Assembly: GCF_006345805.1 (NCBI RefSeq)
Contig: NC_043003.1
Span: 51,274,001 to 51,338,000 of the forward strand
DNA: 64,000 nt
Source of the DNA: Octopus sinensis
Lineage: Eukaryota
Reading direction: 5' to 3'
The position numbers were made by a program, and so were the translations under genes. Under the pieces are notes generated by a model. That model made no database searches. It was given only the letters and a program-made list of their open reading frames with translations, and was not told where the DNA came from. This document shows, piece by piece, positions 4,669-64,000 of this stretch. Within the stretch, counting starts at the first letter, position 1, and each line of letters opens with the position of its first letter.

Positions 4669-4669
4669 C

Positions 4670-5130
4670 CTAAATTCCTGAATACTAAATATATGACTAA
4701 TATATACTATGGGCTTTCCATTTTGAAACATTTTCCCTGTTGCTGCAAATTCAGATGCATCAACAGTGAGTTTGTTTCACACTTGATAGAGAATGTTGCT
4801 GAAATACAGTATTGTATGTTTTATTTCTAAAAGGTCTATTTTTGATATAATCTTTAAGTAAAGACATTCCTTTTTTGTGCAAGAGGCTCAAATATGTTTA
4901 TAAAATTTAGGATAAATAGCTTATCAACCCCAAATATTTCTGAATTTCTTCTTTCTATTTAGAAAAACCAGTCTGTTGAATCTTGTCTTATTAGAGTAAA
5001 TGGTAGTTTGATCCCATTCATTGAATTATTTATAGAAAATCTATGGTAGATGCATAATTACTTCATTTATTTGGATTAATTGATATGTTGGTTTCTTTCA
5101 CTTTAAGAATTAACAGCAGTTTTTATTTTT
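4670..5130 (-). mobile_element. Upstream part of the same Gypsy pol (RT thumb and RNase H N-terminus)
   Basis: Minus-strand IQKYLGLISY (~LQSFLGLVNY), IFEPL, and LTVDASEF...QNGKPIVYISH (~VDASEYGIGAVLLQNGKPIAYASR). Confidence 0.62.
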
Positions 5131-9759: not shown

Positions 9760-10117
9760 TTATCGAAATCGAATTGAACCAGCCAGGATCCCTGGTCTGG
9801 TGGTACGTAAAAAGCACTATCCGACTCGTGGCCGATGCCAGCGCCGTTTCGACTGGCTTCCGTGCCGGTGGCACGTAAAATACACCAATCCGACCGTGGC
9901 CGTTGCCAGCCTCGCCTGGCACCTGTGCAGGTGGCACGTTAAAAGCACCCACTACACTCACGGAGTGGTTGGCGTTAGGAAGGGCATCCAGCTGTAGAAA
10001 CATTGCCAGATAAGACTGGAGCCTGGTGCAGCCTTCTGGCTTCCCAGATCCCCGGTCGAACCGTCCAACCCATGCTAGCATGGAGAACGGACGTTAAACA
10101 ATGATGATGATGATGAT
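9760..10117 (+). mobile_element. LINE-tail/SINE family copy ending in (GAT)n; other copies ~10630-10840(-), 12480-12575(-), 16060-16555(+), 23730-23895(+), 33630-33790(-), 35135-35527(+), 38040-38198(-), 40504-40682(+)
   Basis: Shared core GTAAAAAGCACCCACTACACTC..GGAAGGGCATCCAGC..CCAACCCATGCTAGCATGG plus (GAT)n; homologous to the RTE-X 3' UTR at 3181-3360. Confidence 0.85.
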
Positions 10118-36269: not shown

Positions 36270-39173
36270 CGATGGGCTTCTTTTCATTTCCATCTACCAA
36301 ATCCACTCACAAGGCTTTGGTCAGCCTGAGGCTATAGTAGAAGACACTTACCCAAGGTGCCATGCAGTGGGACTGAACCCGGAGACATGTCGTTCGTAAG
36401 CAAGCTACTTACCACACAGCCACTCCTACACCTATATATATATATATATATTGGGAACAGTGAGGTAAAGCTATAAAATGATAGTCTCTAAACATTGGGT
36501 TGAAAAACCCTTTAGAAAGAAAAATGATGGATTTCTTCAGTTTCCATCAATCAAATTCACTAAGAAATCATTGATTGGCCTGGCACTAAACCTGAAACTA
36601 TGTGGTCACAAAGCAACTTCTTAACCATACGGCCATGTCTGCACCAACACTGCAAGCAACCCTCTGCTCAATCAAGTGAACCTACAAAATCAATGACTCT
36701 TTCCTCCCTTCTCTAACAAAAGCTATGAAATATATAAAAATAAAAATGAAAATTACTCCTCGAGATCTAAGACTAGCTGTATTAATAGTGCAGCAGCTTG
36801 TGTTTTTATTACCAAATTGGGGTGCTGCTTCAGAAAATTTTTAGCCATTGTTTTAATATTGTGTAAAAGGAAACAAACATATAAAAAGAATATTTATACA
36901 TAAACTTGATTGGTTCACTTTTTAGCCACTGCCGGATAGTTTGTTTAATTTGTTCACTGAACTTCACCGCGAATTCCCCCTTGTTTTTCAAAAATCCCAC
37001 CTAAATCACAAAATAAGGGGTGGGGGAATATGCCCGATTTTTCAAATCCTGGCAGCAACACTGAAGCTATTCGATACTATCATTTTCAAGAATATAAACA
37101 TGTTTTTAAACACAAGATACACAGAGTGAAAAAGAAACACTACCTATCACCAGCACACCGGGGATGGCACTGCGTGAACCCAGTGCTCTCTTCTTAGCGT
37201 GAAGCTTCCTATCTTGGATTCATGAGCATACACACAACAACCAAACACTGCATCGCTGCAGCTGTGAAGCGCACAGTTGTATACAAGGATTTTTGTATTT
37301 TTTCATAAACCAGGCAACTGATATTAATTGTAAGCATTATAGAAAGGCAGCGAGCTCGCAGAAACGTTAGCACGCTGGGCGAAATGCTTAGCAGTATTTC
37401 GTCTGCCGCTACATTCTGAGTTCAAATTCTGCCAAGGTCAGCTTTGCCTTTCATCCTTTCGAGGTCAATTAAATAAGTACCAGTTATGCACTGGGGGTCG
37501 ATATATTCGACTTAATCCGTGTGTCTGTCCTTGTTTGTCCTCTCTGTGTTTAGCCCCTTGTGGGTAGTAAAGAAATAAGTTTTTCTCCCATCTATATGTT
37601 CTGAGTTCAAATTCCACCTAGGTCGATTTTACCTTTCATCCTTTCAGGGTCGATGAATTAAGTACCAGTTGCATATTGGGGTCAATCTAGTCGACTGACC
37701 CCCGCTCCCCCAAAATTTCGGGCTTTATGCCTAGAATAGAAAAAAATCTTTTAAATCTTAAGGATTATATAACGTACATGTATAAAGAAAGAAATTGAAT
37801 GTTATCAATAATATCGAGTGGAAATAGGGGGTGCTGCAGTGCCTACACATGAGCCGCCACTGACAGAAATGCTATTCTCTGATGCAGCAGAATTTTTTTG
37901 TCAGTGAACAGATCGCAGTTTCAAGCAACGAAAAATTTGTCGCCATGTTACAAGTAAATGTTTTAGTGAAGAAAACAGTCTTTGTGCATTTCTGAATGGC
38001 TAGCTTGTGTCTTTTGCAATTGCTTTAGTTTCAGCACATGATGATGATCATCATCATCGTTTAACGTCCGCTTTCCATGCTAGCATGGGTTGGACGGTTC
38101 GACTGGGGTCTGGGAAGCCCGAAGGCTGCACCAGGCCCAGTCAGATCTGGCAGTGTTTCTACAGCTGGATGCCCTTCCTTAACACCAACCACTCTGTGAG
38201 TGTAGAGATAAAAATACTTGCTATGCAAATATATATCTGTCTTTTGAAGTTGTTGGTTGTATTCACAACTCCACAATGTAGACTTAGTAACTGTCTTCTG
38301 TGTGACAATTCGGTGGTGGTGGCAGTGTTTGGCTGCTCTTTGTCAAATCACACTATCGTCTTAAAAAGAAAGGCACATTGAGAAATGTTTTCCCAGATAC
38401 ATTGTGTAGAATAAGATAAAAAGAGGTGTGTTTATAGTTGGAATGCATGTGTTGATGTGTCACGTCTGCACCTACTTGGCTAAACAAAACAAAGAAAAGA
38501 CTAAAATATGACATTTCTACATCTAAAAAAAGTCTTGACATAATGTCTTTAACAATAGGACCACATGATCATAAACAAGATCATGTTCACATACCTGATA
38601 TTTTCTCTAAACTCACACACTGCTATCGAAAAAAAGACATAGGATTATGTAGCCTGGGATGGTCATGGTTAAAATATCTTTTATCATAGGTTAGCAGATC
38701 GTGGCTAATGATAAGAAATGCTTTTGATGGTTGTTATAGGTGGTGTTTAGCCTCAGATCAGCCTACGATCGCAGGCATTTCCGCTCATGACATATCTTTG
38801 GGTATACCATACATAGGTCTATTTTAACCAATGTGTCCTTTTATTTTAAGATAGTAGTGTGATCTGAGGCATATGTGGCTGCTATTTCTAGTAGGTTAAG
38901 CAACCATGTAGGGACTCCTATGTTTGTTTATTTCCAATAGTTGTCAAACAGGGTAAATCTAAGTATATCTCAAAGCAAATTCTTACAGTGTTGTACCATT
39001 GAATTATAAATAATGCTCATCTTGCAGATGGATCTGTATGTATAAAGTTCTACAAATTATATTTAAGTGTATCTTTCAAATGTCTTCACTTTGTCACGCT
39101 GAGATCGGAAACTACCCTGCAGTTAATAAACTACAGCAGTCAATTTACCGGTTAGAGAACATTTTTTTATTTA

Positions 39174-40490: not shown

Positions 40491-40679
40491 TATATATATA
40501 TATGGTACGTAAAAAGCACCCACTACACTCGCGGTGTGGTTGGCGTTAGGAAGGGCATCCAGCCGTAGAAACACTGCCAGATCAGACTGGGCCTGATGCA
40601 GCCTTCTGGCTTCACAGACCCCAGTTGAACCGTCCAACCCATGCTAGCATGGAAAACGGACTCTAAATGATGATGATGA

Positions 40680-40725
<46 letters not shown>

Positions 40726-42472: not shown

Positions 42473-42622
42473 TATGTATGTATGTATGTATGTATTATGT
42501 ATGTATGTGGGTGTATGTATGTATGTATGTATTATGTATGCATGTATGTGTGTGCATGTATGTATGTTTGTGTGTATGTATTATGTATGTATGTATGTGT
42601 GTATGTATTTATGTATGTATGT
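42473..42622. repeat. (TATG)n microsatellite; a second tract at 43216-43281 abuts the gap
   Basis: Direct reading. Confidence 0.9.
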
Positions 42623-42652
42623 AAAACTTGGAAAAGGATGCGTGGCGTTCGA

Positions 42653-43204
42653 TCATATATATTATATAAAATCCGTTCTGTGTGTGTGTGTGTGTCTTTT
42701 AGGATCTCGGGCATCCTCCATCCGATTGCGCTCAAATTTGATATATAGATACCGACGGTATCAGAGCGTGTATAAGTCTTTAAAAAATTACAAAAATCGA
42801 TTCCAGGTGAGAATGCGATCGGTAAAGCCGTGGGAACGTGCATTTGTACGCGCAAGTACATCAGCTGTTGCGATCGATACTACGCGTACGCGAGAAAAAT
42901 ACAGTGCAGTTTGCGCAAAAAAGCCGGCTGCCTTGAAATAATGCCACAAAATGCAGTATATTTAACGGACCAAAAGAGTAAGATGCAAAAGAGATATTTT
43001 CTTCAAACTTGGCATGAAGGAAGGAAAGACTATTTGCTTTCTCAAGAAGTTTTTTTTTTGCGTTAACTTCGTTTAACAAAACCCCCAAAATTATTGAAAT
43101 AAAGGCATGCTTAATTATTTTTAAATGAAAAGAAAACACTGATTGCTTTTTATTCAGCAGATATGACTCAGCACCGTCCATTGGACGGGGGTGCGTTTTG
43201 CTCG
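42653..43204 (+). mobile_element. Non-autonomous Helitron-like element (~550 bp)
   Basis: A|TC..TATATAAAA 5' end with (GT)n. Perfect subterminal hairpin CCGTCC-ATT-GGACGG at 43174-43188, then CTCG|T terminus. Flanked by (TATG)n. Confidence 0.6.
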
Positions 43205-43281
43205 TAATAATATATTATGTATGTATGTATGTATGTATGTATGTATGTATGTATGTATGTATGTATGTATGTATGTATGTA

Positions 43282-43381
43282 NNNNNNNNNNNNNNNNNNN
43301 NNNNNNNNNNNNNNNNNNNNNNNNNNNNNNNNNNNNNNNNNNNNNNNNNNNNNNNNNNNNNNNNNNNNNNNNNNNNNNNNN
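43282..43381. other. Assembly gap (100 N)
   Basis: Run of N; likely a placeholder of unknown size. Confidence 0.98.
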
Positions 43382-46300
43382 TTCTCTATTCACAAATAAT
43401 ACAGAATAGCCCTTCAAAATAAGCACGAAATATACAATCACATTTTATTGCAATAACACAAACGCACATGGAGAAAATAATGATGCTAAGATTCTCTCTG
43501 GTCGAACACAGCTTCTCTATTCACAAATAATACAGAATAGCCCTTCAAAATAAGCACGAAATATACAAACACTTTTTATTGCAATAACACAAACGCACAT
43601 GGAAAAAATAATGATGCTAAGATTCTCTCTGGTCGAACACAGCTTCTCTATTCACAAATAATGCAGAATAGCCCTTCAAAATAAGCACGAAATATACAAA
43701 CAATTTTTATTGCAATAACACAAACGCACATGGAAAAAATAATGATGCTAAGATTCTCTCTGGTCGAACACAGCTTCTCTATTCACAAATAATACAGAAG
43801 AGCCCTTCAAAATAAGCACGAAATATACAAACATTTTTTATTGCAATAACACAAACGCACATGGAAAATAATGATGGCTAAGATTCTCTCTGGTCGAACA
43901 CAGCTTCTCTATTCACAAATAATACAGAATAGCCCTTCAAAATAAGCACGAAATATAACAAACATTTTTTATTGCAATAACACAAACGCACATGGAAAAA
44001 ATAATGATGCTAAGATTCTCTCTGGTCGAACACAGCTTCTCTATTCACAAATAATACAGAACAGCCCTTCAAATAAGCACACGAAAATACAAACATCTTT
44101 TTATTGCAATAACACAAACGCACATGGAAAAAATAATGATGCTAGATTCTCTCTGGTCGAACACAGCTTCTCTATTCACAAATAATACAGAACAGCCCTT
44201 CAAATAAGCACGAAATATACAAACATTTTTAATTGCAATAACACAAACGCACATGGAAAAAATAATGATGCTAAGATTCTCTCTGGTCGAACACAGCTTC
44301 TCTATTCACAATAATACAGAATAGCCCTTCAAAATAAGCACGAAATATACAAATATTTTTTATTGCAATAACACAAACGCACATGGAAAAAATAATGATG
44401 CTAAGATTCTCTCTGGTCGAACACAGCTTCTCTATTCACAAATAATACAGAATAGCCCTTCAAAATAAGCACGAAATTACAAACAACTTTTTATTGCAAT
44501 AACACAAACGCACATGGAAAAAATAATGATGCTAAGATTCTCTCTGGTCGAACACACACAGCTTCTCTATTCACAAATAATCAGAACAGCCCTTCAAAAT
44601 AAGCACGAAATATACAAACACTTTTTTATTGCAATAACACAAACGCACATGGAAAAATAATGATGCTAAGATTCTCTCTGGTCGAAACAGCCTCTATTCA
44701 CAAATAATACAGAACAGCCCTTCAAAATAAGCACGAAATATACAAACACTTTTTATTGCAATAACACAAACGCACATGGAAAAAATAATGATGCTAAGAT
44801 TCTCTCTGGTCGAACACAGCTTCTCTATTCACAAATAATACAGAACAGCCCTTCAAAATAAGCACGAAATATACAAACATTTTTATTGCAATAACACAAA
44901 CGCACATGGAAAAAATAATGATGCTAAGATTCTCTCTGGTCGAACACAGCTTCTCTATTCACAAATAATACAGAGTTGCCCTTCAAATAAGCACGAAATA
45001 TACAAACAATTTTTATTGCAATAACACAAAGCACATGGAAAAATAATGATGCTAAGATTCTCTCTGGTCGAACACAGCTTCTCTATTCACAAATAATACA
45101 GAATAGCCCTTCAAAATAAGCACGAAATATACAAACACTTTTTATTGCAATAACACAAACGCACATGGAAAAAATAATGATGCTAAGATTCTCTCTGGTC
45201 GAACACAGCTTCTCTATTCACAAATAATACAGAATAGCCCTTCAAAATAAGCACGAAATATACAAACACTTTTTATTGCAATAACAGAAACGCACATGGA
45301 AAAAATAATGATGCTAAGATTCTCTCTGGTCGAACACAGCTTCTCTATTCACAAATAATACAGAATAGCCCTTCAAAATAAGCACGAAATATACAAACAC
45401 TTTTTATTGCAATAACACAAACGCACATGGAAAAAATAATGATGCTAAGATTCTCTCTGGTCGAACACAGCTTCTCTATTCACAAATAATACAGAATAGC
45501 CCTTCAAAATAAGCACGAAATATACAAACACTTTTTATTGCAATAAAACAAACGCACATGGAAAAAATAATGATGCTAAGATTCTCTCTGGTCGAACACA
45601 GCTTCTCTATTCACAAATAATACAGAATAGCCCTTCAAAATAAGCACGAAATATACAAACACTTTTTATTGCAATAACACAAACGCACATGGAGAAAATA
45701 ATGATGCTAAGATTCTCTCTGGTCGAACACAGCTTCTCTATTCACAAATAATACAGAATAGCCCTTCAAAATAAGCACGAAATATACAAACACTTTTTAT
45801 TGCAATAACACAAACGCACATGGAAAAATAATGATGCTAAGATTCTCTCTGGTCGAACACAGCTTCTCTATTCACAATTACAGAATAGCCCTTCAAAATA
45901 AGCACGAAATATACAAACATTTTTTATTGCAATAACACAAACGCACATGGAAAAAATAATGATGCTAAGATTCTCTCTGGTCGAACACAGCTTCTCTATT
46001 CACAAATAATACAGAATAGCCCTTCAAAATAAGCACGAAATATACAAACACTTTTTATTGCAATAACACAAACGCACATGGAAAAAATAATGATGCTAAG
46101 ATTCTCTCTGGTCGAACACAGCTTCTCTATTCACAAATAATACAGAACAGCCCTTCAAAATAAGCACGAAATATACAAACATTTCTAATTGCAATAACAC
46201 AAACGCACATGGAAAAAATAATGATGCTAAGATTCTCTCTGGTCGAACATAGCTTCTCTATTCCAAAATAATACAGAATAGCCCTTCAAAATAAGCACGA

Positions 46301-49300
46301 AATATACAAACATTTTTTATTGCAATAACACAAACGCACATGGAAAAAATAATGCTGCTAAGATTCTCTCTGGTTGAACACAGCTTCTCTATTCACAAAT
46401 AATACAGAATAGCCCTTCAAAATAAGCACGAAATATACAAACATGTTTTATTGCAATAACACAAACGCACATGGAAAAAATAACGATGCTAAGATTCTCT
46501 CTGGTCGAACACAGCTTCTCTATTCACAAATAATACAGAACAGCCCTTCAAAATAAGCACGAAATATACAAACATTTTTTATTGCAATAACACAAACGCA
46601 CATGGAAAAAATAATGATGCTAAGATTCTCTCTGGTCGAACACAGCTTCTCTATTCACAAATAATACAGAATAGCCCTTCAAAATAAGCACGAAATATAC
46701 AAACATTTTTTATTGCAATAACACAAACGCACATGGAAAAAATAATGATGCTAAGATTCTCTCTGGTCGAACACAGCTTCTCTATTCACAAATAATACAG
46801 AACAGCCCTTCAAAATAAGCACGAAATATACAAACATGTTTTATTGCAATAACACAAACGCACATGGAAAAAATAATAATGCTAAGATTCTCTCTGGTCG
46901 AACACAGCTTCTCTATTCACAAATAATACAGAATAGCCCTTCAAAATAAGCACGAAATATACAAACATTTTTTATTGCAATAACACAAACGCACATGGAA
47001 AAAATAATGATGCTAAGATTCTCTCTGGTCGAACACAGCTTCTCTATTCACAAATAATACAGAACAGCCCTTCAAAATAAGCACGAAATATACAAACATT
47101 TTTTATTGCAATAACACAAACGCACATGGAAAAAATAATGATGCTAAGATTCTCTCTGGTCGAACACAGCTTCTCTATTCACAAATAATAGAAGACAGCC
47201 CTTCAAAATAAGCACGAAATATACAAACATTTTTTATTGCAATAACACAAACGCACATGGAAAAAATAATGATGCTAAGATTCTCTCTGGTCGAACACAG
47301 CTTCTCTATTACAAATAATACAGAATAGCCCTTCAAAATAAGCACGAAATATACAAACATTTTTTATTGCAATAACACAAACGCACATGGAAAAATAATG
47401 ATGCTAAGATTCTCTCTGGTCGAACACAGCTTCTCTATTCACAAATAATACAGAACAGCCCTTCAAAATAAGCACGAAATATACAAACATTTTTTATTGC
47501 AATAACACAAACGCACATGGAAAAAATAATGATGCTAAGATTCTCTCTGGTCGAACACAGCTTCTCTATTCACAAATAATACAGAACAGCCCTTCAAAAT
47601 AAGCACGAAATATACAAACATTTTTATTGCAATAACACAAACGCACATGGAAAAATAATGATGCTAAGATTCTCTCTGGTCGAACACAGCATCTCTATTC
47701 ACAAATAATACAGAACAGCCCTTCAAAATAAGCACGAAATATACAAACATTTTTTATTGCAATAACACAAACGCACATGAAAAAATAATGATGCTAAGAT
47801 TCTCTCTGGTCGAACACAGCTTCTCTATTCACAAATAATACAGACAGCCCTTCAAAATAAGCACGAAATATACAAACATTTTTTATTGCAATAACACAAA
47901 CGCACATGGAAAAAATAATGATGCTAAGATTCTCTCTGGTCGAACACAGCTTCTCTATTCACAAATAATACAGAACAGCCCTTCAAAATAAGCACGAAAT
48001 ATACAAACATGTTTTATTGCAATAACACAAACGCACATGGAAAAATAATGATGCTAAGATTCTCTCTGGTCGACACAGCTTCTCTATTCACCAATAATAC
48101 AGAATAGCCCTTCAAAATAAGCACGAAATATACAAACATTTTTTATTGCAATAACACAAACGCACATGGAAAAAATAATGATGCTAAGATTCTCTCTGGT
48201 CGAACACAGCTTCTCTATTCACAAATAATACAGAACAGCCCTTCAAAATAAGCACGAAATATACAAACATGTTTTATTGCAATAACAGAAACGCACATGG
48301 AAAAAATAATGATGCTAAGATTCTCTCTGGTCGAACACAGCTTCTCTATTCACATATAATACAGAAGAGCCCTTCAAAATAAGCACGAAATATACAAACA
48401 TTTTTTATTGCAATAACACAAACGCACATGGAAAAAATAATGATGCTAAGATTCTCTCTGGTCGAACACAGCTTCTCTATTCACAAATAATACAGAATAG
48501 CCCTTCAAAATAAGCACGAAATATACAAACATTTTTTATTGCAATAACACAAACGCACATGGAAAAAATAATGATGCTAAGATTCTCTCTGGTCGAACAC
48601 AGCTTCTCTATTCACAAATAATACAGAATAGCCCTTCAAAATAAGCACGAAATATACAATCACATTTTATTGCAATAACACAAACGCACATGGAGAAAAT
48701 AATGATGCTAAGATTCTCTCTGGTCGAACACAGCTTCTCTATTCACAAATAATACAGAATAGCCCTTCAAAATAAGCACGAAATATACAAACACTTTTTA
48801 TTGCAATAACACAAACGCACATGAAAAAATAATGATGCTAAGATTCTCTCTGGTCGAACACAGCTTCTCTATTCACAAATAATACAGAATAGCCCTTCAA
48901 AATAAGCACGAAATATACAAACACTTTTTATTGCAATAACACAAACGCACATGGAAAAAATAATGATGCTAAGATTCTCTCTCTGGTCGAACACAGCTTC
49001 TCTATTCACAAATAATACAGAAGAGCCCTTCAAAATAAGCACGAAATATACAAACATTTTTTATTGCAATAACACAAACGCACATGGAAAAAATAATGAT
49101 GCTAAGATTCTCTCTGGTCGAACACAGCTTCTCTATTCACAAATAATACAGAACAGCCCTTCAAAATAAGCACGAAATATACAAACATGTTTTATTGCAA
49201 TAACAGAAACGCACATGGAAAAAATAATGATGCTAAGATTCTCTCTGGTCGAACACAGCTTCTCTATTCACCAATAATACAGAACAGCCCTTCAAAATAA

Positions 49301-52300
49301 GCACGAAATATACAAACACTTTTTATTGCAATAACACAAACGCACATGGAAAAAATAATGATGCTAAGATTCTCTCTGGTCGAACACAGCTTCTCTATTC
49401 ACAAATAATACAGAATAGCCCTTCAAAATAAGCACGAAATATACAAACATTTTTTATTGCAATAACACAAACGCACATGGAAAAAATAATGATGCTAAGA
49501 TTCTCTCTGGTCGAACACAGCTTCTCTATTCACAAATAATACAGAATAGCCCTTCAAAATAAGCACGAAATATACAAAATATTTTTATTGCAATAACACA
49601 AACGCACATGGAAAAAATAATGATGCTAAGATTCTCTCTGGTCGAACACAGCTTCTCTATTCACAAATAATACAGAATAGCCCTTCAAAATAAGCACGAA
49701 ATATACAAACACTTTTTATTGCAATAACACAAACGCACATGGAAAAAATAATGATGCTAAGATTCTCTCTGGTCGAACACAGCTTCTCTATTCACAAATA
49801 ATACAGAATAGCCCTTCAAAATAAGCACGAAATATACAAACACTTTTTATTGCAATAACACAAACGCACATGGAGAAAATAATGATGCTAAGATTCTCTC
49901 TGGTCGAACACAGCTTCTCTATTCACAAATAATACAGAATAGCCCTTCAAAATAAGCACGAAATATACAAACACTTTTTATTGCAATAACACAAACGCAC
50001 ATGGAAAAAATAATGATGCTAAGATTCTCTCTGGTCGAACACAGCTTCTCTATTCACAAATAATACAGAATAGCCCTTCAAAATAAGCACGAAATATACA
50101 AACATTTTTTATTGCAATAACACAAACGCACATGGAAAAAATAATGATGCTAAGATTCTCTCTGGTCGAACACAGCTTCTCTATTCACAAATAATACAGA
50201 CAGCCCTTCAAAATAAGCACGAAATATACAAACATTTTTATTGCAATAACACAAACGCACATGGAAAAAATAATGATGCTAAGATTCTCTCTGGTCGAAC
50301 ACAGCTTCTCTATTCACAAATAATACAGAAAGCCCTTCAAAATAAGCACGAAATATACAAACACTTTTTATTGCAATAACACAAAACGCACATGGAAAAA
50401 ATAATGATGCTAAGATTCTCTCTGGTCGAACACAGCTTCTCTATTCACAAATAATACAGAATAGCCCTTCAAAATAAGCACGAAATATACAAACATTTTT
50501 ATTGCAATAACACAAACGCACATGGAAAAATAATGATGCTAAGATTCTCTCTGGTCGAACACAGCTTCTCTATTCACAAATAATACAGAATAGCCCTTCA
50601 AAATAAGCACGAAATATAAAACATTTTTTATTGCAATAACACAAACGCACATGGAAAAAATAATGATGCTAAGATTCTCTCTGGTCGAACACAGCTTCTC
50701 TATTCACAAATAATACAGAATAGCCCTTCAAAATAAGCACGAAATATACAAACATTTTTATTGCAATAACACAAACGCACATGGAAAAAATAATGATGCT
50801 AAGATTCTCTCTGGTCGAACACACAGCTTCTCTATTCACAAATAATACAGAATAGCCCTTCAAAATAAGCACGAAATATACAAACACTTTTTATTGCAAT
50901 AACACAAACGCACATGGAAAAAATAATGATGCTAAGATTCTCTCTGGTCGAACACAGCTTCTCTATTCACAAATAATACAGAATAGCCCTTCAAAATAAG
51001 CACGAAATATACAAACACACTTTTTATTGCAATAACACAAACGCACATGGAAAAAATAATGATGCTAAGATTCTCTCTGGTCGAACACAGCTTCTCTATT
51101 CACAAATAATACAGAATAGCCCTTCAAAATAAGCACGAAATATACAAACATTTTTATTGCAATAACACAAACGCACATGGAAAAAATAATGATGCTAAGA
51201 TTCTCTCTGGTCGAACACAGCTTCTCTATTCACAAATAATACAGAATAGCCCTTCAAAATAAGCACGAAATATACAAACATTTTTTATTGCAATAACACA
51301 AACGCACATGGAAAAAATAATGATGCTAAGATTCTCTCTGGTCGAACACAGCTTCTCTATTCACAAATAATACAGAATAGCCCTTCAAAATAAGCACGAA
51401 ATATACAAACACTTTTATTGCAATAACACAAACGCACATGGAAAAAATAATGATGCTAAGATTCTCTCTGGTCGAACACAGCTTCTCTATTCACAAATAA
51501 TACAGAATAGCCCTTCAAAATAAGCACGAAATATACAAACACTTTTTATTGCAATAACACAAACGCACATGGAAAAAATAATGATGCTAAGATTCTCTCT
51601 GGTCGAACACAGCTTCTCTATTCACAAATAATACAGAATAGCCCTTCAAAATAAGCACGAAATATACAAACACTTTTATTGCAATAACACAAACGCACAT
51701 GGAAAAAATAATGATGCTAAGATTCTCTCTGGTCGAACACAGCTTCTCTATTCACAAATAATACAGAATAGCCCTTCAAAATAAGCACGAAATATACAAA
51801 CATTTTTATTGCAATAACACAAACGCACATGGAAAAAATAATGATGCTAAGATTCTCTCTGGTCGAACACAGCTTCTCTATTCACAAATAATACAGAACA
51901 GCCCTTCAAAATAAGCACGAAATATACAAACATGTTTTATTGCAATAACAGAAACGCACATGGAAAAAATAATGATGCTAAGATTCTCTCTGGTCGAACA
52001 CAGCTTCTCTATTCACCAATAATACAGAACAGCCCTTCAAAATAAGCACGAAATATACAAACACTTTTTATTGCAATAACACAAACGCACATGGAAAAAA
52101 TAATGATGCTAAGATTCTCTCTGGTCGAACACAGCTTCTCTATTCACAAATAATACAGAATAGCCCTTCAAAATAAGCACGAAATATACAAACATTTTTT
52201 ATTGCAATAACACAAACGCACATGGAAAAAATAATGATGCTAAGATTCTCTCTGGTCGAACACAGCTTCTCTATTCACAAATAATACAGAATAGCCCTTC

Positions 52301-55300
52301 AAAATAAGCACGAAATATACAAATATTTTTTATTGCAATAACACAAACGCACATGGAAAAAATAATGATGCTAAGATTCTCTCTGGTCGAACACAGCTTC
52401 TCTATTCACAAATAATACAGAATAGCCCTTCAAAATAAGCACGAAATATACAAACACTTTTTATTGCAATAACACAAACGCACATGGAAAAAATAATGAT
52501 GCTAAGATTCTCTCTGGTCGAACACAGCTTCTCTATTCACAAATAATACAACAGATAGCCTTCAAAATAAGCACGAAATATACAAACACTTTTTATTGCA
52601 ATAACACAAACGCACATGGAAAAAATAATGATGCTAAGATTCTCTCTGGTCGAACACAGCTTCTCTATTCACAAATAATACAGAACCCTTCAAAATAAGC
52701 ACGAAATATACAAACATTTTTTATTGCAATAACACAAACGCACATGGAAAAAATAATGATGCTAAGATTCTCTCTGGTCGAACACAGCTTCTCTTCTCTA
52801 TTCACAATAATACAGACAGAACAGCCCTTCAAAATAAGCACGAAATATACAAACATTTTTTATTGCAATAACACAAACGCACATGGAAAAATAATGATGC
52901 TAAGATTCTCTCTGGTCGAACACAGCTTCTCTATTCACAAATAATACAGAATAGCCCTTCAAAATAAGCACGAAATATACAATTTTTTATTGCAATAACA
53001 CAAACGCACATGGAAAAAATAATGATGCTAAGATTCTCTCTGGTCGAACACAGCTTCTCTATTCACAATCAATAATACAGAATAGCCCTTCAAAATAAGC
53101 ACGAAATATACAAACACTTTTTATTGCAATAACACAAACGCACATGGAAAAAATAATGATGCTAAGATTCTCTCTGGTCGAACACAGCTTCTCTATTCAC
53201 AAATAATACAGAATAGCCCTTCAAAATAAGCACGAAATATACAAACACTTTTTATTGCAATAACACAAACGCACATGGAAAAAATAATGATGCTAAGATT
53301 CTCTCTGGTCGAACACAGCTTCTCTATTCACAAATAATACAGAATAGCCCTTCAAAATAAGCACGAAATATACAAACACTTTTTATTGCAATAACACAAA
53401 CGCACATGGAGAAAATAATGATGCTAAGATTCTCTCTGGTCGAACACAGCTTCTCTATTCACAAATAATACAGAAGAGCCCTTCAAAATAAGCACGAAAT
53501 ATACAAACACTTTTTATTGCAATAACACAAACGCACATGGAAAAAATAATGATGCTAAGATTCTCTCTGGTCGAACACAGCTTCTCTATTCACAAAATAC
53601 AGAATAGCCCTTCAAAATAAGCACGAAATATACAAACACTTTTTATTGCAATAACACAAACGCACATGGAAAAAATAATGATGCTAAGATTCTCTCTGGT
53701 CGAACACAGCTTCTCTATTCACAAATAATACAGAATAGCCCTTCAAAATAAGCACGAAATATACAAACATTTTTTATTGCAATAACACAAACGCACATGG
53801 AAAAAATAATGATGCTAAGATTCTCTCTGGTCGAACACAGCTTCTCTATTCACAAATAATACAGAACAGCCCTTCAAAATAAGCACGAAATATACAAACA
53901 TGTTTTATTGCAATAACAGAAACGCACATGGAAAAAATAATGATGCTAAGATTCTCTCTGGTCGAACACAGCTTCTCTATTCACCAATAATACAGAACAG
54001 CCCTTCAAAATAAGCACGAAATATACAAACACTTTTATTGCAATAACACAAACGCACATGGAAAAAATAATGATGCTAAGATTCTCTCTGGTCGAACACA
54101 GCTTTCTATTCACAAATAATACAGAATAGCCCTTCAAAATAAGCACGAAATATACAAACATTTTTTATTGCAATAACACAAACGCACATGGAAAAAATAA
54201 TGATGCTAAGATTCTCTCTGGTCGAACACAGCTTCTCTATTCACAAATAATACAGAATAGCCCTTCAAAATAAGCACGAAATATACAAACATTTTTTATT
54301 GCAATAACACAAACGCACATGGAAAAAATAATGATGCTAAGATTCTCTCTGGTCGAACACAGCTTCTCTATTCACAAATAATACAGAATAGCCCTTCAAA
54401 ATAAGCACGAAATATACAAACACTTTTTATTGCAATAACACAAACGCACATGGAAAAAATAATGATGCTAAGATTCTCTCTGGTCGAACACAGCTTCTCT
54501 ATTCACAAATAATACAGAATAGCCCTTCAAAATAAGCACGAAATATACAAACACTTTTTATTGCAATAACACAAACGCACATGGAAAAAATAATGATGCT
54601 AAGATTCTCTCTGGTCGAACACAGCTTCTCTATTCACAAATAATACAGAACAGCCCTTCAAAATAAGCACGAAATATACAAACATTTTTTATTGCAATAA
54701 CACAAACGCACATGGAAAAAATAATGATGCTAAGATTCTCTCTGGTCGAACACAGCTTCTCTATTCACAAATAATACAGAACAGCCCTTCAAAATAAGCA
54801 CGAAATATACAAACATGTTTTATTGCAATAACACAAACGCACATGGAAAAAATAATGATGCTAAGATTCTCTCTGGTCGAACACAGCTTCTCTATTCACA
54901 AATAATACAGAACAGCCCTTCAAAATAAGCACGAAATATACAAACATTTTTTATTGCAATAACACAAACGCACATGGAAAAAATAATGATGCTAAGATTC
55001 TCTCTGGTCGACCACAGCTTCTCTATTCACAAATAATACAGAATAGCCCTTCAAAATAAGCACGAAATATACAAACATTTTTATTGCAATAACACAAACG
55101 CACATGGAAAAAATAATGATGCTAAGATTCTCTCTGGTCGAACACAGCTTCTCTATTCACAAATAATACAAACAGCCCTTCAAAATAAGCACGAAATATA
55201 CAAACATTTTTTATTGCAATAACACAAACGCACATGGCAAAAATAATGATGCTAAGATTCTCTCTGGTCGAACACAGCTTCTCTATTCACAAATAATACA

Positions 55301-58300
55301 GAACAGCCCTTCAAAATAAGCACGAAATATACAAACATTTTTTATTGCAATAACACAAACGCACATGGAAAAAATAATGATGCTAAGATTCTCTCTGGTC
55401 GAACACAGCTTCTCTATTCACAAATAATACAGAATAGCCCTTCAAAATAAGCACGAAATATACAAACATTTTTTATTGCAATAACACAAACGCACATGGA
55501 AAAATAATGATGCTAAGATTCTCTCTGGTCGAACACAGCTTCTCTATTCACAAATAATACAGAACAGCCCTTCAAAATAAGCACGAAATATACAAACATT
55601 TTTTATTGCAATAACACAAACGCACATGGAAAAAATAATGATGCTAAGATTCTCTCTGGTCGAACACAGCTTCTCTATTCACAAATAATACAGAACAGCC
55701 CTTCAAAATAAGCACGAAATATACAAACATTTTTTATTGCAATAACACAAACGCACATGGAAAAAATAATGATGCTAAGATTCTCTCTGGTCGAACACAG
55801 CTTCTCTATTCACAATAATACAGAACAGCCCTTCAAAATAAGCACGAAATATACAAACATTTTTTATTGCAATAACACAAACGCACATGGAAAAAATAAT
55901 GATGCTAAGATTCTCTCTGGTCGAACACAGCTTCTCTATTCACAAATAATACAGAACAGCCCTTCAAAATAAGCACGAAATATACAAACATTTTTTATTG
56001 CAATAACACAAACGCACATGGAAAAAATAATGATGCTAAGATTCTCTCTGGTCGAACACAGCTTCTCTATTCACAAATAATACAGAATAGCCCTTCAAAA
56101 TAAGCACGAAATATACAAACATTTTTTATTGCAATAACACAAACGCACATGGAAAAATAATGATGCTAAGATTCTCTCTGGTCGAACACAGCTTCTCTAT
56201 TCACCAATAATACAGAATAGCCCTTCAAAATAAGCACGAAATATACAAACTTTTTTATTGCAATAACACAAACGCACATGGAAAAAAATAATGATGCTAA
56301 GATTCTCTCTGGTCGAACACAGCTTCTCTATTCACAAATAATACAGAACAGCCCTTCAAAATAAGCACGAAATATACAAACATTTTTTATTGCAATAAAA
56401 CAAACGCACATGGAAAAAATAATGATGCTAAGATTCTCTCTGGTCGAACACAGCTTCTCTATTCACAAATAATACAGAATAGCCCTTCAAAATAAGCACG
56501 AAATATACAAACTTTTTTATTGCAATAACACAAACGCACATGGAAAAAATAATGATGCTAAGATTCTCTCTGGTCGAACACAGCTTCTCTATTCACAAAT
56601 AATACAGAATAGCCCTTCAAAATAAGCACGAAATATACAAACATTTTTTATTGCAATAACACAAACGCACATGGAAAAAATAATGATGCTAAGATTCTCT
56701 CTGGTCGAACACAGCTTCTCTATTCACAATAATACAGAAGATAGCCCTTCAAAATAAGCACGAAATATACAAACATTTTTTATTGCAATAACACAAACGC
56801 ACATGGAAAAAATAATGATGCTAAGATTCTCTCTGGTCGAACACAGCTTCTCTATTCACAAATAATACAGAATAGCCCTTCAAAATAAGCACGAATATAC
56901 AAACACTTTTTTTTGCAATAACACAAACGCACATGGAAAAAATAATGATGCTAAGATTCTCTCTGGTCGAACACAGCTTCTCTATTCACAAATAATACAG
57001 AACAGCCCTTCAAAATAAGCACGAAATATACAAACATTTTTTATTGCAATAACACAAACGCACATGGAAAAAATAATGATGCTAAGATTCTCTCTGGTCG
57101 AACACAGCTTCTCTATTCAAAATATTACAGAATAGCCCTTCAAAATAAGCACGAAATATACAAACATTTTTTATTGCAATAACACAAACGCACATGGAAA
57201 AAATAATGATGCTAAGATTCTCTCTGGTCGTCGAACACAGCTTCTCTATTCACAAATAATACAGAATAGCCCTTCAAAATAAGCACGAAATATACAAACA
57301 CTTTTTATTGCAATAACACAAACGCACATGCAAAAAATAATGATGCTAAGATTCTCTCTCTCGTCGAACACAGCTTCTCTATTCACAAATAATACAGAAT
57401 AGCCCTTCAAAATAAGCACGAAATATACAAACACTTTTTATTGCAATAACACAAACGCACATGGAAAAATAATGATGCTAAGATTCTCTCTGGTCGAACA
57501 CAGCTTCTCTATTCACAAATAATACAGAATAGCCCTTCAAAATAAGCACGAAATATACAAACACTTTTTATTGCAATAACACAAACGCACATGGAAAAAA
57601 TAATGATGCTAAGATTCTCTCTGGTCGAACACAGCTTCTCTATTCACAAATAATACAGAACAGCCCTTCAAAATAAGCACGAAATATACAAACATTTTTT
57701 ATTGCAATAACACAAACGCACATGGAAAAAATAATGATGCTAAGATTCTCTCTGGTCGAACACAGCTTCTCTATTCACAAATAATACAGAACAGCCCTTC
57801 AAAATAAGCACGAAATATACAAACATTTTTTATTGCAATAACACAAACGCACATGGAAAAAATAATGATGCTAAGATTCTCTCTGGTCGAACACAGCTTC
57901 TCTATTCACAAATAATACAGAATAGCCCTTCAAAATAAGCACGAAATATACAAACATTTTTTATTGCAATAACACAAACGCACATGGAAAAAATAATGAT
58001 GCTAAGATTCTCTCTGGTCGAACACAGCTTCTCTATTCACAAATAATACAGAACAGCCCTTCAAAATAAGCACGAAATATACAAACATGTTTTATTGCAA
58101 TAACACAAACGCACATGGAAAAAATAATGATGCTAAGATTCTCTCTGGTCGAACACAGCTTCTCTATTCACAAAAATACAGAATAGCCCTTCAAAATAAG
58201 CACGAAATATACAAACATTTTTATTGCAATAACACAAACGCACATGGAAAAAATAATGATGCTAAGATTCTCTCTGGTCGAACACAGCTTCTCTATTCAC

Positions 58301-61300
58301 AAATAATACAGAACAGCCCTTCAAAATAAGCACGAAATATACAAACATTTTTATTGCAATAACACAAACGCACATGGCAAAAATAATGATGCTAAGATTC
58401 TCTCTGGTCGAACACAGCTTCTCTATTCACAAATAATACAGAACAGCCCTTCAAAATAAGCACGAAATATACAAACATTTTTTATTGCAATAACACAAAC
58501 GCACATGGAAAAAATAATGATGCTAAGATTCTCTCTGGTCGAACACAGCTTCTCTATTCACAAATAATACAGAATAGCCCTTCAAAATAATACGAAATAT
58601 ACAAACATTTTTTATTGCAATAACACAAACGCACATGGAAAAATAATGATGCTAAGATTCTCTCTGGTCGAACACAGCTTCTCTATTCACAAATAATACA
58701 GAACAGCCCTTCAAAATAAGCACGAAATATACAAACATTTTTTATTGCAATAACACAAAACGCACATGGAAAAATAATGATGCTAAGATTCTCTCTGGTC
58801 GAACCACAGCTTCTCTATTCACAAATAATACAGAACAGCCCTTCAAAATAAGCACGAAATATACAAACATTTTTTATTGCAATAACACAAACGCACATGG
58901 AAAAATAATGATGCTAAGATTCTCTCTGGTCGAACACAGCTTCTCTATTCACAAATAATACAGAACAGCCCTTCAAAATAAGTTAAGAAAATTTAAAATT
59001 TACATATCTACATTTTCAATCATACATTCGACCAGCTTTATACCCATAATTGCCTCTGTAAAGATCTTTATTTATTATTTTTTTTCTTCTCTCAAAAACA
59101 TCACGCTTTTCTTTTTTCTTTCTTTTTGTGGACTTACAAACGCTAAAACTTTATGAAAATCTGACTTTTCTCTGCTTCTCCTTGAATATTGAAATATATG
59201 TAAAATATACTTTTTATTGTAAAAACACACACCTGTTCTTCTAACTGGACATAAACATCTCTAGAAAAGTCAACTTCAACCTCCACAAATATTACCTTAC
59301 AGGAAATATACAAACACTTTTTATTGCAATAACACAAACGCACATGGAAAAAAAATGTTGATGCTACGATTCTCTCTGGTCGAACACACTTCTCTATTCA
59401 CAAATATACAGAATAGCCCTTCAAAAAGCACGAATATACAAACACTTTTTATTGCAATAACACAACGCACATGGAAAAAATAATGATGCTAAGATTCTCT
59501 CTGGTCGAACACAGCTTCTCTATTCACAAATAATACAGAACAGCCCTTCAAAATAAGCACGAAATATACAAACATTTTTTATTGCAATAACACAAACGCA
59601 CATGGATAAAATAATGATGCTAAGATTCTCTCTGGTCGAACACAGCTTCTCTATTCACAAATAATACAGAACAGCCCTTCAAAATAAGCACGAAATATAC
59701 AAACATGTTTTATTGCAATAACACAAACGCACATGGAAAAAATAACGATGCTAATATTCTCTCTGGTCGAACACAGCTTCTCTATTCACAAATAATACAG
59801 AACAGCCCTTCAAAATAAGCACGAAATATACAAACATTTTTTATTGCAATAACACAAACGCACATGGAAAAAATAATGATGCTAAGATTCTCTCTGGTCG
59901 AACACAGCTTCTCTATTCACAAATAATACAGAATAGCCCTTCAAAATAAGCACGAAATATACAAACATTTTTTATTGCAATAACACAAACGCACATGGAA
60001 AAAATAATGATGCTAAGATTCTCTCTGGTCGAACACAGCTTCTCTATTCACAAATAATACAGAACAGCCCTTCAAAATAAGCACGAAATATACAAACATG
60101 TTTTATTGCAATAACACAAACGCACATGGAAAAAATAATGATGCTAAGATTCTCTCTGGTCGAACACAGCTTCTCTATTCACAAATAATACAGAATAGCC
60201 CTTCAAAATAAGCACGAAATATACAAACATTTTTTATTGCAATAACACAAACGCACATGGAAAAAATAATGATGCTAAGATTCTCTCTGGTCGAACACAA
60301 CTTCTCTATTCACAAACAATACAGAACAGCCCTTCAAAATAAGCACGAAATATACAAACATTTTTTATTGCAATAACACAAACGCACATGGCAAAAATAA
60401 TGATGCTAAGATTCTCTCTGGTCGAACACAGCTTCTCTATTCACAAATAATACAGAACAGCCCTTCAAAATAAGCACGAAATATACAAACATTTTTTATT
60501 GCAATAACACAAACGCACATGGAAAAAATAATGATGCTAAGATTCTCTCTGGTCGAACACAGCTTCTCTATTCACAAATAATACAGAATAGCCCTTCAAA
60601 AAAGCACGAAATATACAAACATTTTTTATTGCAATAACACAAACCCACATGGAAAAAATAATGATGCTAAGATTCTCTCTGGTCGAACACAGCTTCTCTA
60701 TTCACAAATAATACAGAACAGCCCTTCAAAATAAGCACGAAATATACAAACATTTTTTATTGCAATAACACAAACGCACATGGAAAAATAATGATGCTAA
60801 GATTCTCTCTGGTCGAACACAGCTTCTCTATTCACAAATAATACAGAACAGCCCTTCAAAATAAGCACGAAATATACAAACATTTTTTATTGCAATAACA
60901 CAAACGCACATGGCAAAAATAATGATGCTAAGATTCTCTCTGGTCGAACACAGCTTCTCTATTCACAAATAATACAGAACAGCCCTTCAAAATAAGCACG
61001 AAATATACAAACATTTTTTATTGCAATAACACAAACGCACATGGAAAAAATAATGATGCTAAGATTCTCTCTGGTCGAACACAGCTTCTCTATTCACAAA
61101 TAATACAGAACAGCCCTTCAAAATAAGCACGAAATATACAAACATTTTTTATTGCAATAACACAAACGCACATGGAAAAATAATGATGCTAAGATTCTCT
61201 CTGGTCGACCACAGCTTCTCTATTCACAAATAATACAGAACAGCCCTTCAAAATAAGCACGAAATATACAAACATTTTTTATTGCAATAACACAAACGCA

Positions 61301-63329
61301 CATGGAAAAAATAATGATGCTAAGACTCTCTCTGGTCGAACACAGCTTCTCTATTCACAAATAATACAGAACAGCCCTTCAAAATAAGCACGAAATATAC
61401 AAACATTTTTTATTGCAATAACACAAACGCACATGGAAAAAATAATGATGCTAAGATTCTCTCTGGTCGAACACAGCTTCTCTATTCACAAATAATACAG
61501 AACAGCCCTTCAAAATAAGCACGAAATATACAAACATTTTTTATTGCAATAACACAAACGCACATGGAAAAAATAATGATGCTAAGATTCTCTCTGGTCG
61601 AACACAGCTTCTCTATTCACAAATAATACAGAACAGCCCTTCAAAATAAGTTAAGAAAATTTACAAATTTACATATCTACAGTTTTCAATCATACATTCG
61701 ACCAGCTTTAATACCCACAATTGCCTCTGTAAACATCCTTTATTTATTATTTTTTTTCTTCTCTCTAAAAACATCACGCTTTTCTTTTTTTTTTTTCTTT
61801 TTGTGGACTTACAAAACCTAAAACTTTCTATGAAAATCTGACTTTTCTCTGTTCCCCCTGAATATTGAAATATAAATGTAAACATATACTTTTTGTAACA
61901 AAAACACACTGTTCTTCTAACTGGACATACAAACATCTCTAGAAAAGTCAACTTCAACCTCCACAATATTACCTTACAGGAAATATACAAACACTTTTTA
62001 TTGCAATAACACAAACGCACATGGAAAAAAAAATGTTGATGCTACGATTCTCTCTGGTCGAACACAACTTCTCTATTCACAAACAATACAGAATAGCCCT
62101 TCAAAATAAGCACGAAATATACAAACTTTTTTTATTGCAATAACACAAACGCACATGGAAAAAATAATGATGCTAAGATTCTCTCTGGTCGAACACAGCT
62201 TCTCTATTCACAAATAATACAGAACAGCCCTTCAAAATAAGCACGAAATATACAAACATTTTTTATTGCAATAACACAAACGCACATGGAAAAAATAATG
62301 ATGCTAAGATTCTCTCTGGTCGAGCACAGCTTCTCTATTCACAAATAATACAGAACAGCCCTTCAAAATAAGCACGAAATATACAACATTTTTTATTGCA
62401 ATAACACAAACGCACATGGAAAAAGAAAGATGCTAAGATTCTCTCTGGTCGAACACAGCTTCTCTATTCACAAATAATACAGAACAGCCCTTCAAAATAA
62501 GCACGAAATATACAAACATTTTTTATTGCAATAACACAAACGCACATGAAAAAATAATGATGCTAAGATTCTCTCTGGTCGAACACAGCTTCTCTATTCA
62601 CAAATAATACAGATAGCCCTTCAAAATAAGCACGAAATATACAAACATTTTTTATTGCAATAACACAAACGCACATGGAAAAAATAAAGATGCTAAGATT
62701 CTCTCTGGTCGAACACAGCTTCTCTATTCACAAATAATACAGAACAGCCCTTCAAAATAAGTACGAAATATACAAACATTTTTTATTGCAATAACACAAA
62801 CGCACATGGAAAAAATAATGATGCTAAGATTCTCTCTGGTCGAACACAGCTTCTCTATTCACAAATAATACAGAACAGCCCTTCAAAACAAGTTAAGAAA
62901 ATTTACAAATTTACATATCTACAGTTTTCAATCATACATTCGACCAGCTTTAATACCCACAATTGCCTCTGTAAACATCCTTTATTTATTATTTTTTTAT
63001 CTTCTCTCTAAAAACATCACTTTTTTCTTTTTTTTTTTTTTCTTTTGTGGACTTACAAAACCCTAAATCTTTCTATGAAAATCTGACTTTTCTCTGCTTC
63101 CTCCCTGAATATTCAAATATAAATGTAAACATATACTTTTTATTGTAAAAACACACCTGTTCTTCTAACTGGACATACAAACATCTCTAGAAAAGTCAAC
63201 TTCAACCTCCATATACAAACACTTTTTATTGCAATAACACAAACGCACATGGAAAAAAAAAATGTTGATGCTACGATTCTCTCTGGTCGAACACAACTTC
63301 TCTATTCACAAACAATACAGAACCGCCCT
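43382..63329. repeat. 131-bp tandem satellite, ~145 monomers (consensus TTCTCTATTCACAAATAATACAGAA(T/C)AGCCCTTCAAAATAAGCACGAAATATACAAACA(C/T)TTTTTATTGCAATAACACAAACGCACATGGAAAAAATAATGATGCTAAGATTCTCTCTGGTCGAACACAGC)
   Basis: Period measured directly (TTCAAAATAAG at 45241 and 45372). Monomers are highly homogeneous; copy number is estimated from length. Confidence 0.97.
58983..59302. repeat. ~320-bp module interrupting the satellite (further copies 61651-61979 and 62893-63210)
   Basis: Three near-identical copies, each starting TTAAGAAAATTTA at the same monomer position (after AAAA(T/C)AAG) and each followed by the same diverged monomer. Confidence 0.95.
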
Positions 63330-63464
63330 TCCTTAATTTTTCTTAAGCCTAATAGTAGTAAACATCTGAACTTTTTTTGAGCGATAGGACCGCACCTAAA
63401 GGAAAAAAAGGAAAGACAGTCAGCCAGCCAACCACCAAGCCAGCCAACGAGACAGACAGACACT

Positions 63465-63690
63465 ACTGTGATGGTGATAATGATAAAAAAACAAAAATAA
63501 CAATAATAAGATACTGCTGTGACTACACATAAAACAATATCATTGATGATGATGGTGGTGATGGTGATGGTGATGATGATAATGATGATGGTAATGGTGG
63601 TGATAATGATGATAGTGATGGTAGTGGTGATGATAATTATAATAATAAGCCGACTACGGCTGCTATAATGGTACGATTATAATTGTAACG
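63465..63690. repeat. Compound trinucleotide microsatellite (TGA/TGG/TAA)n
   Basis: Direct reading. Confidence 0.85.
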
Positions 63691-63757: not shown

Positions 63758-64000
63758 ATGTTTTTGGAAACTAAAAGGAAAACTAAATTAGTATACCAAA
63801 TCGCTTGTCCTATGGTTAATCTGGAAGCGCGTCCCCCAGGGAAGAGCCAGCCTGGGATCGAAAAGTCATCAACTGGCACAAACTCTTCTCCGAATACGGA
63901 CATGGATGGTCACTTGAACGGGAAATCCCCCAACTTGAGCCCTCCAAGTTCACCACCACAACCACCACAGAAAGAAAAATGTAAGCGGAACAAATGGACC
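63758..64000 (+). mobile_element. ORF open to the window edge (MFLETKRK...MVNLEARPPGKSQPG...KCKRNKWT); possible N-terminus of an R4/Dong-clade non-LTR retrotransposon
   Basis: 81 codons with no stop; ATG in CACCAAAATG context. A Pro/Ser-rich leader ending in KRNKWT resembles the 'R.KWT.EEN' start of R4/Dong ORFs as I recall it. Only 63-81 aa are visible. Confidence 0.4.

Follow-up and report, generated by a model that had tools for sequence, protein, structure and literature searches.

In a 64,000-nucleotide stretch of the Octopus sinensis genome (assembly GCF_006345805.1, contig NC_043003.1, forward-strand positions 51,274,001 to 51,338,000; hereafter the window), a long array of a 131-bp satellite monomer contains three copies of a module of about 320 bp (M1, M2 and M3), each followed by a distinctive variant monomer (v1, v2 and v3). 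The reading favoured here, to which we give about an even chance of being right, is that a pre-existing 131-bp array was interrupted between monomer positions 128 and 129 and that the interruption was then multiplied by unequal crossover. Exchange through a variant monomer is the best-supported part of this scenario and is shared with an alternative in which module and monomer together form a unit resembling a miniature inverted-repeat transposable element (MITE). From sequence comparison we infer that the copies arose by crossover, in what order the events took place and that the module is an interruption, not an ancestor. The modules were delimited as gaps in the array with Tandem Repeats Finder (TRF) and BLAST, and the variant monomers by a signature and their variant states; the main features, in window coordinates, are as follows.

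43382 to 63331, plus strand: satellite array of 131-bp units, about 145 units head-to-tail, 67% A+T.
43282 to 43381, no strand: 100-N assembly gap, forming the left end of the assembled array.
58983 to 59302, plus strand: module copy M1, 320 bp, the most divergent and rich in indels.
59303 to 59431, plus strand: variant monomer v1.
61651 to 61979, plus strand: module copy M2, 329 bp.
61980 to 62113, plus strand: variant monomer v2, six substitutions from the consensus.
62893 to 63210, plus strand: module copy M3, 318 bp, with a private 20-bp deletion at its 3' junction.
63211 to 63331, plus strand: variant monomer v3, corresponding to monomer positions 4–120.

With about 145 near-identical 131-bp monomers arranged head-to-tail over 20 kb, the array is satellite DNA in the usual sense of the term. 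TRF reports it as 43382–61650 plus 61980–62892, and the consensus monomer gives 146 BLAST matches in the whole window, all on the plus strand and confined to 43382–63331. The mean distance of an ordinary monomer from the consensus is 1.37 substitutions, and the strand asymmetry of the array is strong (AT skew +0.25, GC skew −0.30). As its left end is a scaffold gap, the length of the array is at least 20 kb as assembled, and the number of modules is likewise a lower bound.

All three modules enter the 131-bp monomer after position 128, in agreement with the single common interruption point described in an earlier, sequence-only reading of this DNA. The left junction, ..CAAAATAAG/TTAAGAAAATTT (monomer position 128/module), is identical for M1, M2 and M3, and the sequence reads ..AAAATAAG/TTAAGAAAATTT.. 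across the break; since the same 128/TTAAG junction is found in three modules out of three, it arose once. On the right, the monomer restarts at position 1 after M1 and M2, where it is preceded by ..CCTTACAG, and at position 4 after M3, whose 20-bp junction deletion is private. The module itself ends in CAG, similar to the CAC at monomer positions 129–131.

The composition of the module changes along its length. Positions 1–217 of the module consensus are T-rich (AT skew −0.22), while the 3' 114 nt (positions 218–331) have a monomer-like composition (AT skew +0.15, GC skew −0.47). Within this 3' part, one patch aligns with the start of the monomer:

63112 to 63155, plus strand: monomer-like patch in M3, module consensus 218–259 resembling monomer positions 1–34 (alignment against controls).

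Control segments score as well as this patch in 24 of 3000 random genomic and 17 of 1500 GC-matched draws (p~0.01), and in 3 of 1000 in an anchored global alignment test, p-values that, like the one given below for the array edge, concern degenerate similarity between short A/T-rich stretches, some of them tested after inspection by eye. The 3' ~115 bp of the module may thus be a badly degraded monomer.

The distinctive monomer that follows each module is confirmed by its signature, ATGTTGATGCTACGATT, which occurs exactly three times in the window (0.00 expected). Common to v1, v2 and v3 are 15C, a change of the A-run to TGTT type and 63C; 85A and 102C are found, among the variants, in v2 and v3 and not in v1. 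The first variant is of variant type through position 63 (15C, TGTT change, 63C) and beyond that point has a 1-bp deletion at 85 and T at 102, as expected if a crossover point lies inside v1. Except for 63C and a cluster of indels, v1 (eight indels in all) is identical to ordinary monomers carrying 15C and 112T, and its distance to several ordinary monomers is one substitution plus one indel cluster. It therefore looks, from its sequence states, like a hybrid between a variant-type and an ordinary monomer. Both 15C and 112T are frequent among ordinary monomers (40 of 145 and 74 of 145, respectively), and the variants, only modestly diverged, branch from this common 15C/112T subfamily and do not fall outside all monomers; the result comes close to the nesting that the sequence-only reading had itself named as evidence against its proposal. 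Outside v2 and v3, the pair 85A and 102C is carried by one ordinary monomer, in which it is probably a conversion patch:

60216 to 60346, plus strand: ordinary monomer with 85A and 102C, variant states otherwise confined to v2 and v3.

The three copies are unequally related. BLAST identity is 95% between M2 and M3 and 91% between M2 and M1; over ~320 bp, M2 and M3 differ by 11 substitutions, and M1 differs from each of the others by 15. Indel columns number 19 between M1 and M2, and three, plus the 20-bp deletion, between M2 and M3, and the apparent divergence of M1 and v1 may in part be consensus error. The unrooted tree from module substitutions, ((M2,M3),M1), is the same as that given by the variant states, so that each module and its variant must have been copied together. 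A second line of evidence comes from the monomers on the two sides of M1, which form ordered paralogous blocks:

57287 to 58982, plus strand: 13 monomers directly left of M1, an ordered paralogue of the 13 units on its right.
59303 to 60999, plus strand: 13 units right of M1 (v1 and 12 monomers), paralogous to 57287–58982.

The ordered variants common to both blocks are 15C/112T, 112T, 16G+112T, 46C and 112T; nine of 5000 random sets score as well, and the M1-adjacent block ranks second of 107 contiguous blocks (p~0.002–0.02). This is exactly the paralogy to be expected if the variant had exchanged unequally with the monomer 13 places upstream. The proposal of a joint re-duplication of module and variant in whole blocks is thus upheld by the matching trees and by the ordered paralogues on either side of M1. 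The spacing of ~18 and ~7 monomers holds when counted in units but not as a count of ordinary monomers, M1 and M2 being separated by the variant and 17 ordinary monomers and M2 and M3 by the variant and six. Spacings of 18 and 7 units provide no fixed multi-monomer period such as a regular higher-order repeat would have, and the modules (3.4–4.7% substitutions) are not more alike than neighbouring monomers, which lie ~1% from the consensus.

The end of the array is less abrupt than had been thought. The terminal module and variant were said to run straight into unique DNA; instead, clear identity ends at 63331 and is followed by 12 odd bases, TAAG and then a monomer-like stretch in phase with the array:

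63348 to 63415, plus strand: degenerate partial monomer, in phase with the array and resuming at monomer position 129 (alignment against controls).

At fixed phase, 17 of 5000 shuffles and 15 of 3000 random genomic 68-mers score as well (p~0.004), and the best-scoring phases all fall no more than 9 nt from the one predicted. The match is weak but in phase, and suggests that a decayed partial monomer sits beyond the terminal unit. Satellite-like sequence would then surround M3 and v3, homogeneous on the left, decayed on the right and probably decayed inside. With ordinary monomers to its left and an in-phase degenerate monomer to its right, the terminal unit is embedded in satellite and does not stand at its boundary.

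Put together, these observations suggest the following course of events. One monomer near an old, decaying end of the array would have been interrupted after position 128 by ~325 bp of DNA consisting of a T-rich, non-satellite stretch of ~215 bp and then of ~115 bp resembling a badly degraded monomer. The interruption would have shielded the variant monomer from homogenisation, allowing it to keep or acquire a few private changes. Twice later, the variant would have paired out of register with an ordinary monomer lying to its left on the homologue or sister chromatid, and the resulting unequal crossover would each time have copied the module together with the left part of the variant and set them before a run of ordinary monomers. 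In the exchange that gave M1, the variant may have paired with the 13th monomer upstream, duplicating the module and everything between the pairing points, in which case the five further near-consensus monomers ahead of M2 would be later additions. The resulting order would be ordinary monomers, M1, v1, 17 ordinary monomers, M2, v2, six ordinary monomers, M3, v3, the degenerate monomer and unique DNA. An interruption at 128/129 explains both junction phases with no need for coincidence. The model as a whole explains the phase at every junction, why v1 looks like a hybrid, why the blocks beside M1 are paralogous and why a decayed monomer lies past v3. At least one unequal exchange, and probably two, has left its products in this edge of the array, the one that faces the putative gene.

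Several observations weigh against this reading. The module tree is unrooted, and a block in the array interior (index 20–32, 46037–47735) matches 59303–60999 about as well as the M1-adjacent block does. Shared variants were also sought in the monomers flanking M2 and M3, where only private variants were found, and the second crossover draws no support from the paralogy test. The module taken alone is flanked by no target-site duplication and shows no other sign of insertion (flanks AAG/../CAG), and the interruption model leaves the source of the T-rich 215 bp, putatively of non-satellite origin, unexplained. A further difficulty is an inverted repeat, located by an inverted-repeat search, that ties the first base of the module to the end of the v3 homology:

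62893 to 62905, plus strand: left arm TTAAGAAAATTTA, the first 13 bases of the module, present also at 58983 and 61651.
63334 to 63346, minus strand: right arm (TAATTTTTCTTAA on the plus strand), starting 2 nt past the end of v3 homology.

A plain interruption predicts no such repeat and needs chance or templated mutation to produce it. The chance of an arm falling in a target of ~30 nt is ~2e-4, or roughly 1e-3 allowing for the other places looked.

The inverted repeat is also the foundation of the strongest alternative, which is unlikely in our view and yet well ahead of the remaining ones. In this alternative, 62893–63346, that is the module and one monomer (positions 1–120), would be a MITE-like non-autonomous element with 13-nt inverted repeats, which either seeded the satellite or landed in a related array; M1 and M2 would be left parts of the element, copied through unequal crossover between its internal monomer and monomers of the array. 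Its fullest form, in which the 454-bp unit is mobile, its internal segment became the 131-bp satellite and the seed element is still attached to the array near a gene, is equally tentative; it is the mobile-element version of the earlier proposal that module and variant make up a discrete unit of ~450 bp. The discreteness of that unit gains some support from the repeat at both ends of M3 and v3, and its role as ancestral locus does not. The two arms pair at 12 of 13 positions, lie exactly at the two natural boundaries and, at no more than one mismatch, the motif is limited in the whole window to the three module starts and the one inverted site (0.74 occurrences expected per 128 kb, both strands). 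Directly outside both arms stands TTAA or, alternatively, TAAG, overlapping the near-palindromic arms, and excision of the unit with a TAAG duplication yields a monomer-like site, ..AAAATAAG/CC-TAATAG.., to be compared with ..AAAATAAG/CAC-GAAATA.. in the monomer. Bivalve satellites, moreover, are as a rule carried inside MITE or Helentron-type elements (PMC3879986, PMC7492417, PMC5139131).

These merits have to be set against a number of costs. The internal monomer of such an element must begin (129/1) exactly at the target cut 128/129, a coincidence of ~3–5%, and must end within 8 nt of phase, a coincidence of ~10–15%. The right arm is present on one of the three copies, the terminal one, and absent from M1 and M2; it belongs to a small hairpin (CTTAA-TTTTTC-TTAAG), and both arms are short and A/T-rich. 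The nearly palindromic nature of TTAAG makes any target-site duplication ambiguous. BLAST found zero copies of the module in the other 43 kb of the window, where no second arm occurs either and where a dispersed family resembling short interspersed nuclear elements (SINEs) has at least 10 matches. At the termini of the 454-bp unit, where TTAA or TAAG can be read on both sides, there is no AA as in the target duplication of pearl and DTC84, and inside the module TRF detects T-rich tracts only and no microsatellite of the pearl/DTC84 kind. Neither a 3' palindrome nor a microsatellite of the type seen in Helentron-derived elements (HINEs) is present. The DNA fold of 63326–63430 has an energy of −6.4 kcal/mol (z +0.49 against shuffles) with a stem of only 5 bp, the 5' region, where HINEs have an inverted repeat next to the 5' sub-terminal inverted repeat, folds no better than shuffles do (z −1.02, 33 of 200), and the flanks, ..AAG/ and /GCC..., differ from the HINE pattern of insertion between T and T with no duplication.

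That module and variant are the ancestral single-copy locus, from whose 3' part the 131-bp monomer arose in place and was amplified before whole blocks were re-duplicated, as the sequence-only reading had it, now appears decidedly improbable. The terminal copy does lie at the array edge, and the module tail and the post-v3 sequence, which are alike (GTAAACAT..ACTTTTT) and weakly monomer-like, could be old proto-repeats; by eye both appear to be 15C, hinting that the variants keep an older state, and the final CAG of the module could be read in the same sense. Module tail, variant and degenerate monomer would perhaps make up a small proto-repeat source. Every module, however, the terminal one included, has homogeneous monomers on its left, with the same junction as the internal copies, which is not an ancestral unique context. 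The right breakpoint of the 131-bp unit and the breakpoint of the block duplication would have to coincide at position 128, v1 is only one substitution and an indel cluster away from ordinary monomers, and the changes are unpolarised in the sequence of a single species.

Least probable of all, with only a slight chance, is an assembly artefact that multiplied one module, either through wrong joins between noisy long reads or because haplotypes were strung together in tandem, for although the array abuts a 100-N gap and 1-bp indels are frequent and uneven, especially in the M1/v1 region, the copies differ by 11–15 substitutions and a private 20-bp deletion, the variant differences are orderly and tree-like, and the flanking monomer runs are unlike in length and content.

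A series of other interpretations of the module was tried and rejected. If it were an intron, with its GT..AG ends and a CTAAC branch-like site, splicing should restore the monomer, but its removal gives ..AATAA/GAAATA.. and not the monomer sequence ..AATAAGCACGAAATA... A reading of the whole module as ~2.5 decayed monomers was dropped (global alignment z only 1.8–2.3; 331 bp is not a multiple of 131; the first 217 bp have the opposite AT skew) for the 5' two-thirds and kept as possible for the 3' third. The resemblance of the module head to the monomer start is matched by 1536 of 2000 shuffles, minus-strand alignments to an inverted monomer are not significant, and the right flank was not accepted as a fourth, decayed module, its best match being only a 23-nt stretch to the module tail (z 1.6–2.4). 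A coding role was discarded because the 119-aa open reading frame (ORF) of M2 is interrupted in the other two copies and gave no homologue, and an RNA gene or SINE head on empty Rfam and tRNA searches. A HINE-type structure fails on palindrome, microsatellite and TT site, all absent, and an ordinary insertion of the module alone (SINE, long interspersed nuclear element (LINE) or DNA transposon) on the lack of flanking duplication, terminal repeats, tRNA-like head and conserved ORF, the two ends of the module forming no inverted repeat with each other. The structure has no demonstrated cellular function, and none is implied under any of the readings.

The interior of the array (43427–58982) contains recurring multi-monomer variant motifs, such as 16G+33G+99C at 49174, 51919 and 53887 and 12T/15C/16A/47G at 43427 and 48649, whose recurrence points to older segmental duplications. 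The number of 1-bp indels per monomer ranges from 0.1 to 2.2 by array block; the stretches 43427–44734, 52575–53756 and 58983–59560 have at least two per monomer, against 0.1–0.8 elsewhere, and this clustering suggests that consensus quality varies along a noisy long-read assembly. To the left of the gap, no monomer similarity was found in 43000–43215, and (TATG)n microsatellites lie at 42473–42623 and 43216–43281, the second abutting the 100-N gap that precedes the satellite. On the right, an imperfect (TGA)n/(TGATGG)n microsatellite (63544–63644) separates the array end from a putative exon, an open frame on the plus strand (63805–64000) that opens with an ATG (MVNLEARPPGKSQPGIEKSS...) ~470 bp beyond the end of the array and continues past the window edge. 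If this is a gene's first exon, as it may be, the satellite could lie just upstream of a promoter; a 63-aa fragment of the frame gave no match in a protein collection.

The window, with a GC content of ~0.35, also carries microsatellites and dispersed repeats. The SINE-like family used above as a control for the visibility of an abundant family (at least 10 matches in 43 kb, 70–94% identity, both orientations) has internal sub-repeats of ~62 bp and ~26 bp (GGTGCTTTTTACGTGCCACCGGCAC...), and its copies, recognised by this sub-repeat structure, include the following.

3179 to 3586, 9800 to 10113, 12478 to 12572, 16381 to 16555 and 23735 to 23892: SINE-like family copies.
33623 to 33794, 35151 to 35570, 38047 to 38205 and 40510 to 40682: further copies of the same family.

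A 306-aa ORF on the minus strand (3811–4731) corresponds to the C-terminal portion of a LINE-type reverse transcriptase that has a PHD-type finger; its homologues carry PF00078 and PF00628, and its closest named matches are from Octopus vulgaris (78%) and O. bimaculoides (73%), followed by Hydractinia and oysters. Exact 23–27-mers of monomer and module have zero matches in metagenome, viral and prokaryote-genome collections. In the literature, searches for the monomer string and for octopus satellites came back empty; cephalopod satellite DNA is barely described.

In satellite arrays generally, interruptions are spread by unequal crossing-over and edge monomers are diverged, as illustrated by the age gradient at the edges of alpha-satellite. 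The octopus array resembles such edges in its homogeneous core and diverged edge, in an interruption copied with adjacent monomers, in an irregular long period and in its abrupt junctions. It departs from them in that the 3' third of the interruption is possibly degraded satellite and in the inverted repeat that brackets the interruption and one monomer. An internal or terminal repeat of a transposable element can reportedly become a satellite monomer, with intermediate composite copies surviving, as is said of Tetris in Drosophila virilis and of transposable-element dimers formed by double insertion; in those cases mobility and multiple copies are documented, unlike the octopus unit, which is known from the sequence of one locus.

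Among molluscs, the closest parallels are the tandem-repeat-containing MITEs DTC84 of Donax trunculus and pearl of Crassostrea virginica (PMC3879986). In these, a flanking cassette bearing short inverted repeats encloses core repeats as long as a satellite monomer, diagnostic repeat variants hold fixed positions and a hotspot lies near the monomer junction (PMC3879986), a modular build that the octopus unit, if bounded by its inverted repeat, would resemble. DTC84 and pearl are high-copy and dispersed, with at most five core repeats, an array-adjacent microsatellite and a putative AA target duplication (PMC3879986), whereas the octopus case is one locus in the window, its array is at least 20 kb long, its flank is of TTAA/TAAG type, and one copy alone has the right arm. 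In comparison, the Cg_HINE elements of Crassostrea gigas are Helentron-derived carriers of satellite-like arrays, in which tandem repeats stand between a left and a right flank of constant orientation, the sub-terminal inverted repeats measure 11–12 bp and a variable segment of 10–500 bp precedes the first repeat (PMC7492417); the octopus locus resembles them in this layout. These bivalve Helentron carriers have a 4-nt microsatellite in the left flank ahead of the repeat array (PMC7492417); this left-flank microsatellite, the inverted repeat beside the 5' sub-terminal inverted repeat, the palindrome after the 3' one and insertion at TT with no duplication are features of HINEs (PMC7492417), and none was found at the octopus locus, where the (TATG)n tract at 43216–43281, also of 4-nt period, lies across the assembly gap from the array. 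The abrupt transitions, and the alternation of fragmented monomers with anonymous sequence of comparable length, also recall mollusc satellite junctions (PMC5139131), although the satellites described there are bivalve ones (BIV160, Cg170, DTHS3 and phBglII400) with no sequence relation to the octopus 131-bp monomer. If the 454-bp unit were mobile, the link between transposons and satellites established in bivalves would extend to cephalopods; if it is not, the structure is a product of ordinary satellite dynamics. The hybrid monomer marking a likely crossover point, together with the decayed boundary monomers, makes this locus a useful worked example of turnover at the edge of a satellite array.

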